64,000 bases of DNA from the NCBI GenBank assembly GCA_964270895.1, contig OZ185445.1; one strand, 5' to 3'. Positions 18,778 through 33,806 of the stretch are shown piece by piece. Source of the stretch: Podarcis filfolensis. Lineage: Eukaryota. The notes under the pieces are model-generated. The model was not told where the DNA came from, ran no database searches, and saw only the letters and a list, made by a program, of their open reading frames with translations. Within the stretch, counting starts at the first letter, position 1; every line of letters begins with the position of its first letter. The position numbers and the translations under genes were made by a program.

Positions 18778-18856
18778 CAGGTCACTGACAAGTGGGGTGG
18801 GCTTCTTCTTGCGCAGGTCAGGCATGCTGTCGATGCCATAGAGACCCCCGGCTGGC
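18778..18856 (-). CDS. UNC13B: UNC13B exon, 79 nt, phase 2-0 ([26 protein letters not shown])
   Basis: Acceptor cctttgctttctAG; donor CTG|GTGAGA; near-identical to the mammalian UNC13B peptide. Confidence 0.96.
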
Positions 18857-29600: not shown

Positions 29601-29849
29601 TAGAACATCACAAATCATTTGGCAGACCTCCAGAAACTGGGGTTTTGTGTTTTTTGTTGTTGTTTTGTTTTTGCATTTGTTAAGGGTGCAGAGATAGGGC
29701 AGCCTTTGTCTTTGGCTCTTATCATCTGCTATCTCTGACCAAACTTCAATAAACCATTTCTATTTAATCATTCTGCCTGCAGCTGCTAAACTTTCTGACA
29801 AAAAATGAGCAAGCATTTCACCAGCAAATCTCAAGAACTTTGGGAGTAC

Positions 29850-32196
29850 CTGAATGAATCTCTTCAGCCGAGGAAGTCCAGCTTGCCTCCTGGGCCAGTT
29901 CCTTCAAGAGCCTCCGACGCATCTGCCTCTTTTCCCTCAGGACATTCTTGAAGTTGTTGATGCACTTGTTCAGGTAGATGGTCTCGGCACACACCTTCTC
30001 AAGGCTCATAGGTCGGCACCCGCCGGGCTGCACAGGCGCAGAACCCGGATCCTGCTGGGCCTCTCCAGAGGGGAAGGGCTGCTCCACACAGCTCTCGGAA
30101 TCCGGTGGGGGCACCAGGTCGGGGACCGGAGCTTTGTCAAGAGGCAATGAAGCACTGGGAAGAGTTCTCTGCATCAGGCCCACACTGTCACTGCTCACAG
30201 TCGTGTTAGCCTGGCTCTCAGAAGACTGACTAGGGGGAGTTTCAGCAAAGGTATCCAAGCTGCCATGCACACTTGGGCTACGGAGGGCAGGAGCTGGCTC
30301 ATTGTTCATATGGAAGCTCTTTTCCCCTTCAAGGAGGACTTCTGGGTCCCCGGTCTCCAGTTTGTGGAACACCACCTGCAGCGCAGACCGGAAATGATTC
30401 AGTGCTTTGCCCAGTTTGTTAGTGTAAAACCTCATGTCCACAAGATCAATGCTGTCCCGAGAGTGCTCAAGGAAGTACTGGGAATTTTCTAGGACATCCC
30501 TGAAGACCTGATCAGTTGGGTCTTGCTCGTTCAGGTCAATCTGGATCATGTCTTTGAGCGTCTCACTGCTGTCAACCAATTTGCGCAGAGCGCCATCACA
30601 GCCGGGAGTGGTCATGGCCACCGGTGCCTCCTCCAGGAGACTGACTTGCTCAGGACTGAGAAACTCCAGCGTGGTGGCATCACAGTCCGTCTCGCTTTCC
30701 CCTGGAGTCAGCCCTCCTGCTTGGTCCTCTTCCACAGGGGAGGAGCTGCCCTTGGTGGCATTTTCAGCATCTGAGGCACGTCCCCCTCCTCCCTCACACA
30801 AGGCGGGCACCTTGCCCAAGTACTCCGGGGATGGCAAGGAATCCCTGCCTGTGTTCTCATGCCCAGGGCCTTCCAGCTTCTTGTGGGATGCATCAAGGAC
30901 TCCAGCAGAAGAGCTGCTTTTGTGCAAAGTCTGCTCACTACTGCCCATTATTTGCACAACTCTCCCCACTTTTTCTTCAAGTTCACCAATTAAGTTGCTC
31001 TTCCTAGGTAGGGTGGATTTTGGTTGAAAGTTAAGCCTCTCCCCTACGTGGCGGTGAACCTCTTGGCAGGTGTTTTCCTGCTGAGCCTGGCAAGAGTCCA
31101 CTTGGAGCTGCCCATCTCCGTCCGTCCTGACCACCTCCCCACGAATGTGCAAGGAGCCCCAGTGGTTCCCACTCTGGCCTGGCGAGGGCAAGGTGCCCAG
31201 CTGTGCCCCAGGACCCACCTGGCCATTCTGCTGGCTTTGCTCACCACTGGCCACAATGGTAACTCCTGCACTTTGCAAAAGAATCGATTTCTGGAGAATG
31301 AAGTCTCGCTGCTCAGCGTTAGCAAGCTTTACAACAGCGGGTCGTGGGGCCAGCTGCTTGCCTGTTGCTGCACCAGATCTGTAAGCATCCTTGATGTACT
31401 TGCTACGCTGAATGCCATTGAAACAGTGGTACTCTGACAAGAAACGGTGGACTAGCTCCTTGGTGTTCTCCCCCTCCTGCTCTGGGATGCCATAAAAATA
31501 CAACACTGGCTCTCTGATGGGCCCTCCCAGGAGGGGCTCCCTGACCTTGGCCTTTGGCAATGGGGAGTTTTTGCTGGTGGGGCCAGAGCTGCTCTGCAGG
31601 CCCTCAATCTCGCTCAGAACAGTGTCCACGCAGCTGGAGACTTCGTCCACAGAGCCTTTGATCAAGGTGAGGTGCTGCTGGAGCTCAGCAATCTCGGTCT
31701 GGATGCGACTTATCCCTTGGAGCTCTTTCACGATGTACTCAATGACATCGGCAGAGCGGTCTCTGGGCCCAGGGCTGCAGGGAGTGTAGGCAAGGGGCTT
31801 ACTTGGAGGGCAGGGCCCTTCCCCTTCTCTTTCCCCAGCAACTCCCCTCCAGCCGGTGCCAAGGCTCAAGGCAGCGAGATCGGCTTGCCCCTTGGGGCTC
31901 TCCATTTGCTCCAGAAGGCTCTCTGCAGCCAGGCGGCCAGAGACGCCCCCTAAGTCACACTGGCTTGGAACTAACGCTCGTGGGGCTTCGATGTATCCAT
32001 CCCAGTCCAGCCCACCTTTACTGGCCTCCCTGGTCCCAGGGCTCCTCCCCTGAGCAGCGGAAAAGTCACTGCTTGCAGATTTCCTATTGACGCCACACAC
32101 AAAGGCGTCCGTTTCTATTTCCACGAGGGAAAGCTGCTGGTGGTGATTCTGGCTCAGGGAGAGCTCGCTCGCCGGCCCTTGCAGAAGCTTCTTCAT
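29850..32196 (-). CDS. UNC13B: bMunc13-2 (brain-type) alternative N-terminal exon, 782 codons + 1 nt, starting MKKLLQ
   Basis: ATG at 32196 in an AAGATG context aligns with rodent bMunc13-2 MKRLL. It carries ELQGISRIQTEIAELQQHL, LGKALNHFRSALQVVFHKLE (30355-30414) and CAETIYLNKCINNFKNVLREKR (to about 29896), the last two being the bMunc13-2 CaM sites. Donor TCAG|GTACTC is phase 1. An alternative in-frame ATG lies at 32325. Confidence 0.92.
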
Positions 32197-32503
32197 CTTC
32201 TCCTCCAGAAACAGCAGGGCCTTCTGCTTCTGAGAGGGCTGCCCAGTTAGGAGTTTCACAGCAGACGTTCTAAGCACAGAAGCAATGTCATCTTCTAGCC
32301 TTAGGGTGCCTCTGCCGGCGCACATCCTCAGTGGCCGTGTTGGCGCCCTCTCATCATGCCACAAAGCAGCAGAGGCCTGTGCCCCTCGCTGCCCGCCCAG
32401 CAAGGCTCTCTCGGCCAAGGATTAAGACTCATCAGAAGCCGCTGTCAAGAGAAGGGACAGAGACGCTGTGTATCGGAGTCAGTGGAGAAAAAAGCGATGC
32501 ACA

Positions 32504-33637: not shown

Positions 33638-33806
33638 ACTCGAGGCAGAGCCAGGAAGTCCAGTTAAACCCAGTGACACCACTGAGACCGAGAAAGCTAA
33701 GATCCAGGACAAAGCAGGCATTCCCCCTGACCAGCAGAGGCTGATCTTTGCTGGGAAGCAGCTGGAAGATGGCTGCACGCTCTCCAACTACAACATCCAG
33801 AAGGAC
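33638..33806 (+). pseudogene. Truncated ubiquitin retro-fragment
   Basis: Translates LEAEP...[46 protein letters not shown] versus ubiquitin [49 protein letters not shown]. It lacks the N-terminus and the C-terminal LRLRGG. Confidence 0.9.

Follow-up and report, generated by a model that had tools for sequence, protein, structure and literature searches.

The window analysed here, a stretch of 64,000 nucleotides from contig OZ185445.1 of the Podarcis filfolensis assembly GCA_964270895.1, contains the UNC13B gene on the minus strand. The gene was identified by orthologue mapping and by a tree, and it was squamate-like. An open frame of 866 codons (29818-32418, minus strand) holds the segment of interest, which is a module made of a coiled coil, a linker and an RRM domain of the type found in the ORF1 protein (ORF1p) of long interspersed nuclear elements (LINEs). 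The module belongs to the alternative first coding exon of UNC13B, of the bMunc13-2 type, at 29850-32325 on the minus strand. The original prediction, made from the letters of this stretch, had placed it within one intronless alternative exon. This agreed with the mapping, in which each orthologue gave a single uninterrupted tblastn segment from the ATG at 32325 to the donor at 29850, followed by the shared UNC13 exons.

The first exon contains 2476 coding nucleotides (~2.48 kb), starts with the ATG at 32325-32323 and ends in phase 1. The donor reads CAG/GTACTC, with the last exonic base at 29850 and the GT at 29849-29848. On the 3' side of the exon on the minus strand, a microexon of 23 nucleotides is located at 25332-25310, and the junction of exon and microexon reads SEGSRGELQ in frame, in agreement with a bird orthologue (P0016, EGGRGELQ). 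The exons common to UNC13 follow on the minus strand and were mapped with orthologue proteins at 18855, 16041, 15050 (C1 domain), 11454 (C2B), 5427, 3679 and 1540. Four raw RNA runs from a close relative, with the tissue not recorded, gave two reads on the 3-kb exon, a result that says nothing on its expression. The best matches to the module were found in lizards and one snake (~75%), in birds (~71%), and in mammals and frogs (~55-62%), and the window sequence was placed among squamates in the tree.

The coil and motif strings quoted in the original prediction at 31255-31749 were both found exactly, on the minus strand, across 165 codons without a stop. The module had been placed correctly, and only its boundary was changed, as the folded domain extends three residues further, to 31246. 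On the minus strand, the coiled coil of 55 residues (RSADVIEYIVKELQ...SEIEGLQ) occupies 31594-31758 and was defined by a helix in the AlphaFold2 model, by heptads and by conservation. The linker of 26 residues (31516-31593) is disordered and poorly conserved (predicted local distance difference test, pLDDT, 37-50; conservation 0.29). The RRM domain of 90 residues (31246-31515) has the order beta1-alpha1-beta2-beta3-alpha2-beta4 in the AlphaFold2 fold.

The AlphaFold2 model was built from an alignment of 47 tetrapod sequences. Residues 8-62 formed one helix (pLDDT 92-98), which was followed by the disordered linker and by a compact domain (pLDDT ~80-88), and the model was disordered past residue 180. 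The heptad register of the coil was unbroken, with 14 of the 15 a and d positions hydrophobic, mainly Ile and Val, and 25 coil positions were invariant among the 47 tetrapods. Two near-invariant tyrosines are located in beta1 of the RRM (LYFYG). A fold other than beta-alpha-beta-beta-alpha-beta had been named in the original prediction as grounds against an ORF1p origin, and it was this topology that was obtained.

Three motifs of the RRM have equivalents in ORF1p, all on the minus strand. YGIPE at the end of beta1 (31480-31494) is the equivalent of G(I/V)PE in ORF1p, and it aligns with GVPE of 2w7a and 2ykp and with GIpE of the ORF1p-like profile. IKDAYRSG in beta2 (31372-31395) corresponds in the hhalign columns to I(D/E)RAHR(L)G of ORF1p-type RRMs, and UNC13C has IDIAHRLG. 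PRPAVVKL in beta3 (31324-31347) is the equivalent of PRPIIVKF or PRHIIVRF in ORF1p. The motif order and spacing had been described beforehand as those of ORF1p; the order of coil and then RRM, and the register of the three motifs, bore this out.

Identity along the exon, of 825 residues, was profiled against 13 orthologues. It was 0.74-0.86 in the coil, 0.61-0.74 in the RRM and 0.29 in the linker, dropped to 0.23-0.41 just past the RRM, and was 0.1-0.35 in most of the rest. Judged from these sequence comparisons, conservation across species as an island in a fast-evolving exon indicates constraint. The UNC13B module was found in squamates, birds, mammals, frogs and one shark. Four UNC13B-type proteins found in teleosts (P0083-P0086) were collinear with the exon and kept its N-terminal part, the coil and the island at residues 620-670. 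The RRM signal was absent from these four sequences with all HMMER filters off, and unrelated low-complexity sequence stood in its place. UNC13C of Aldrovandia (P0251) retains the RRM, and the same species is among the teleosts with an RRM-less UNC13B.

To compare structures, the model was searched with Foldseek against 350,542 PDB chains. The nine best matches were all human LINE-1 (L1) ORF1p entries, so that L1 ORF1p was the top match, and the best of them (2w7a_A) had an E-value of 1.6e-4, a TM-score of 0.64 on the target and a root-mean-square deviation of 3.3. The shape neighbours in the ESM Atlas included clusters with Transposase_22 plus Tnp_22_trimer/dsRBD, with Baculo_FP_2nd or with a NADAR fusion. 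A feature search of the ESM Atlas gave leads only (0.86-0.92).

Single-sequence searches of the exon and of the module against Pfam and PDB returned coiled-coil noise only. A word-indexed search with just the module yielded a single fragment, owing to a length filter. The profile of coil and RRM from the 47 tetrapods matched ORF1p chains in PDB at E 0.014-0.09. With the RRM-only profile, four PDB sequences were matched at E<=10, all of them ORF1p (E 0.006-0.03), and GxPE was aligned over GVPE and PRPxVVKL over PRHIIVRF. The profile matches in PDB were therefore exclusively ORF1p chains.

A 97-column RRM profile was then used in an exhaustive search of 1.84 billion representative proteins. The search gave 67 matches at E<=1e-3, including about 55 proteins of 150-450 residues. 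ORF1p-type proteins were reached at E 1e-6 to 1e-3, better than chance for the motif block. The about 55 short proteins had a common ORF1p-type signature, and a few, taken singly, matched Pfam Transposase_22 or Baculo_FP_2nd. The joint profile of the short proteins matched 2ykp, the human ORF1p trimer, at E 1.8e-14, over the coil, the RRM and the beginning of the C-terminal domain (CTD). The other matches were UNC13B proteins, a basking-shark protein (E 1.7e-15), a Munc13 of 1911 residues (E 3e-16) and a mormyrid UNC13C (E 5.8e-5).

Some other features were seen among these proteins. ORF1p-type RRM proteins from invertebrate-like contigs overlapped with Pfam Baculo_FP_2nd, the domain 2 of baculovirus FP25K, and some of them were fused to a NADAR domain or followed by one. 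A beetle protein (P0100) combined an ORF1p-type RRM with a Pao-type retrotransposon protease and DUF5641. These features suggest an ORF1p-RRM superfamily that is broader than the coverage of Transposase_22. Two ORF1p-like members (P0162 and P0095) were located on repeat-rich eukaryotic contigs with long terminal repeat (LTR) element genes and a NADAR open reading frame.

The paralogue UNC13C gave a second route to ORF1p. Plain BLAST aligned the window module, with both its coil and its RRM, to UNC13C of gar, bichir, bowfin, zebrafish and a mormyrid over 175 residues (33-35% identity, E ~1e-25), and the coils of the two paralogues were ~50% identical. A profile from 12 fish UNC13C sequences matched 2ykp at E 6.8e-6, collinear from the coil, which lies along the 2ykp coil, to just past beta4. 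The four best PDB matches of this profile were all ORF1p. Single UNC13C sequences matched Pfam Transposase_22 at the correct location with E 0.006-0.07. UNC13B is thus linked by homology to UNC13C, and UNC13C in turn to ORF1p, which connects UNC13B to ORF1p without circularity.

An unrooted maximum-likelihood tree, built from 81 RRMs over 97 columns, placed the UNC13B and UNC13C RRMs in one clade (99/96). The UNC13B half was supported at 99/99, with the shark included, and the UNC13C half at 90/86. The stem of UNC13B measured 0.84 changes per site and that of UNC13C 0.30, a difference of 2.8-fold. The alignment, the tree and the UNC13C-ORF1p profile match agreed with the earlier suggestion that the Munc13-3 N-terminus may derive from an ORF1 gene as well. 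The single clade points to one capture before the paralogues split. As read from the tree and alignments, this fits a single capture in the ancestral gene that had taken place by the time of the jawed-vertebrate ancestor.

The relationship of the two N-termini is not limited to the module. Two more conserved islands were detected near exon residues 626-650 and 776-800. The first corresponds to 25 residues at 30376-30450 on the minus strand (IDLVDMRFYTNKLGKALNHFRSALQ), with 0.75 identity to the 13 orthologues, and exon residues 621-655 (35 residues) were 51% identical to UNC13C. Since this island is common to both proteins, the paralogy of their N-termini reaches beyond coil and RRM. In profile alignments, the ORF1p likeness ended at the same point in both paralogues, ~10 residues past beta4, and no dsRBD-like CTD was found past the RRM in either. 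In UNC13B, the model was disordered and conservation was low where the CTD would stand. Either the CTD disappeared early on or it was not part of the capture.

The coil in the window is orthologous to the motif with which rat bMunc13-2 binds ELKS1 (residues 145-187), and mammalian orthologues align at ~139-190. Through this coil, the rat protein attaches to the coiled-coil region at the C-terminus of ELKS1 and is recruited to active zones, and rat bMunc13-2 without residues 145-187 is impaired in active-zone accumulation and priming (PMC5379939). The homologous coil of Munc13-3 does not bind ELKS1 (Kawabe 2017, PMC5379939).

A model of three copies of the coil was parallel and in register and scored 0.55 versus 0.02 for the best control, a score that does not tell a trimer from a dimer. 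Run agreement of the trimer model was at least 91% and the partner pLDDT was at least 78. Of 30 proteins solved as pairs, 21 reached the mark used for such models, as did none of 23 solved as single chains, a calibration made with two copies and so a rough one here. The modelling supports self-association of the coil and leaves its oligomeric state unfixed; trimerisation would be plausible.

The RRMs of the two paralogues differed in charge. The mean net charge and isoelectric point (pI) were -1.9 and 6.4 in UNC13B, +5.0 and 9.3 in UNC13C, and +6.2 and 9.5 in the ORF1p-like proteins. With charge as the proxy, the basic character of nucleic-acid binding was therefore not seen in the UNC13B RRM. 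The CTD reportedly makes up half of the RNA cleft of L1 ORF1p, according to the work on 2ykp. RNA binding by UNC13B is doubtful because its RRM is not basic and the CTD is missing, and on these sequence features it appears unlikely. The UNC13C RRM, which is basic and more ORF1p-like, may bind nucleic acids.

We consider it likely that the UNC13B coil-linker-RRM is the remnant of a domesticated LINE ORF1 of the coiled-coil/RRM/CTD type, captured once before the split of UNC13B and UNC13C, with the CTD lost or never captured. The derivation of the brain-type Munc13-2 N-terminus from an ORF1 gene, as originally predicted, is supported by the fold, the ORF1p profile matches and the UNC13C route. 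Several results weigh against it. In Pfam scans with single sequences, neither the window nor any of the 47 tetrapod orthologues matched Transposase_22, and no member reached the gathering threshold of PF02994 (22.4 bits), the best being UNC13C with 17.3 bits. The direct E-values from UNC13B to ORF1p in PDB were only 0.006-0.09. The hhalign comparison of the UNC13B profile with the ORF1p-like set gave 99.4% probability over 86 of 97 columns, and spanned 140 columns with the coil; its E-value is inflated because the set had been chosen by the UNC13B profile, and the case does not depend on this comparison. No LINE ORF2 was found adjoining the loci of P0162 and P0095, so these two cannot be called active LINE ORF1s. 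In the unrooted tree, the UNC13 clade was nested among the ORF1p sequences with weak support (84/45). We infer that descent ran from element to host, because ORF1p-type proteins are widespread in animals, whereas jawed vertebrates were the only group in which the UNC13 module was found; this direction draws on taxonomic breadth. Coiled coils also score easily in such models, and the present one does not separate a trimer from a dimer; what is said on the function of the RRM is deduced solely from its charge and the missing domain.

In structure, ORF1p was ahead of ordinary RRMs by 1-2.4 Z units, and such a modest lead means that structure alone establishes the RRM fold and not the family. The domain might be an ordinary or convergent host RRM, with an ORF1p likeness that is a coincidence of motifs. 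The sequence searches speak against this, as the profile matched solely ORF1p in PDB and none of them returned a generic RRM. Pfam RRM_1 was never matched, either by the window at E<=10 or by the UNC13C modules at E<=1. Furthermore, the significant library matches all had the ORF1p signature, with their own profile matching 2ykp, and a chance likeness does not fit the agreement in coil-then-RRM order and in the register of three motifs. A host RRM origin was rejected for lack of any host RRM in these searches and is very improbable. Separate acquisition of ORF1 by UNC13B and UNC13C at similar positions has a precedent in the repeated exonisation of ORF1 in vertebrates (MYL4, RFX5, NUP42, USP4; PMC12129022). 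It would have to produce RRMs that form one clade, coils that share about half of their residues, a common island at residues 621-655 and two copies that both end just after beta4. Independent capture was rejected on the tree and the shared flanking islands, and we give it even less credence than a host RRM.

The same origin would also be compatible with a module that still works like ORF1p, with bMunc13-2 trimerising through the coil and the RRM binding RNA at active zones. The RRM fold has been conserved for more than 400 million years, the a and d positions are rich in Ile and Val, and the coil passes the trimer model. Canonical RRMs carry stacking aromatics in beta1, and the two near-invariant tyrosines appear to lie where these stack, a position derived from strand alternation. 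The UNC13B RRM is neutral to acidic, unlike the ORF1p-like proteins, and the CTD is missing. In addition, the four teleost UNC13B sequences keep the coil without the RRM, so that at least some of what the exon does must be possible without this domain. Retention of ORF1p-like activity is therefore improbable, and it is less remote than the two rival origins. An equally doubtful proposal is that the coil locks both bMunc13-2 and Munc13-3 into obligate parallel trimers, with three MUN/C1-C2B units per release site and a set stoichiometry of the ELKS1 anchor, and that the RRM, basic in Munc13-3, still binds RNA or ribonucleoprotein. If true, a retrotransposon chaperone would have been reused as the oligomerisation and targeting head of the vesicle priming machine, linking a priming factor to presynaptic RNA.

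For the preferred origin, a domesticated and altered ORF1 remnant, the following course can be proposed. A LINE ORF1 sequence would have entered the ancestral UNC13 gene ahead of the UNC13B/UNC13C split. The coil may have kept a parallel self-association like that of the ORF1p coil, and ELKS1 might dock onto the coil bundle or exchange into it. The UNC13B RRM, minus the basic surface and the CTD, would no longer be an RNA chaperone and was probably kept as a folded protein-interaction module, or as a spacing or structural module, near the ELKS1 site.

In the literature, Kitao, Ichiyanagi and Nakagawa (Genome Res 2025) used the ORF1ps of Dfam to screen RefSeq isoforms (PMC12129022). They noted an ORF1p-like, canonical CC+RRM exon of UNC13C in the Methods and supplement, stating no further analysis (PMC12129022; preprint 10.1101/2024.04.25.591049), and a supplementary AlphaFold view of mouse UNC13C was labelled with CC and RRM (preprint Fig. 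S6, 10.1101/2024.04.25.591049). UNC13B was not mentioned by them (PMC12129022). In our literature search, no paper pairing UNC13B with ORF1p was found, and the link of UNC13C to ORF1 was found only in this work and its preprint. The earlier statement that no description existed thus holds for UNC13B and not for the UNC13C exon. The N-termini of Munc13-2 and Munc13-3 have been called otherwise unrelated apart from the coil (PMC5379939). Under the ORF1 origin, they would have in common a module of two domains and ~175 residues whose descent can be defined.

UNC13B would join the ORF1p-derived host exons, which include L1TD1, Lyosin, L1-RFX5, NUP42-L1, USP4-L1 and UNC13C, and it was partly anticipated by the published aside on UNC13C. 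The UNC13C module, sister to that of UNC13B in the tree, likewise consists of a coil and an RRM without a CTD in a large N-terminal exon. It is much nearer to ORF1p, with IDIAHRLG and KPRPVIVIF kept and a basic pI of 9.3, and its exon is constitutive, whereas that of UNC13B is an alternative first exon. L1 ORF1p (2ykp/2yko/2ykq for the trimer, 2w7a for the RRM, 2ldy for RRM-CTD) and UNC13B both have a coil and then an RRM, with GxPE, xxAxR and PRxxxVxF in the same order. UNC13B differs from L1 ORF1p in that it has no CTD or dsRBD-like domain, has a disordered linker of 26 residues and no basic surface, and falls below the Pfam threshold. Its module is located in a spliced host exon and L1 ORF1p in a bicistronic element.

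Lyosin (MYL4, sauropsids) and L1-RFX5 (catfish) are, like the UNC13B exon, ORF1-derived alternative first coding exons on host genes under purifying selection (PMC12129022). They are lineage-restricted, keep coil, RRM and CTD, and can be recognised with ordinary sequence searches at E<1e-10. By comparison, the capture in UNC13, which includes a shark, is far older and lacks the CTD, and the UNC13B copy is detectable by profiles only. L1TD1 is also a host protein from L1 ORF1p. It is a stand-alone gene, almost all ORF1p-derived, RNA-binding and found in mammals only, whereas the UNC13B module is a small part of a synaptic protein of 1900 residues.

The new elements here are the UNC13B copy, the tracing of the ELKS1-binding coil to ORF1p, one ancient origin for both paralogues, the non-basic divergent RRM and the loss of the RRM in the teleost sequences found. 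On this origin, the element that experiments have shown to target bMunc13-2 to active zones would be a coil inherited from a retrotransposon protein. A folded domain conserved since before the divergence of sharks and bony vertebrates is located 26 residues from the ELKS1 site, and the UNC13 capture would be among the oldest ORF1p domestications proposed.

Some protein names require care. Many bird proteins and one rodent protein labelled "UN13C protein, partial" or "unc-13 homolog C-like" were UNC13B b-exon orthologues by identity, and both bird proteins in the tree (P0016 and P0024) fell within the UNC13B clade. UNC13C-style names on UNC13B orthologues could mislead isoform screens.

Two further observations were made in and near the exon. 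The highest conservation in the exon (0.90) was at 29926-30000 on the minus strand, followed by the basic run QMRRRLLKEL. This stretch looks like an amphipathic basic helix, and we presume that it may match the Ca2+/calmodulin-binding site described for bMunc13-2. Upstream of the exon, an open frame on the plus strand at ~33693-33803 contains a ubiquitin-like stretch and is probably a ubiquitin-derived retrocopy fragment.

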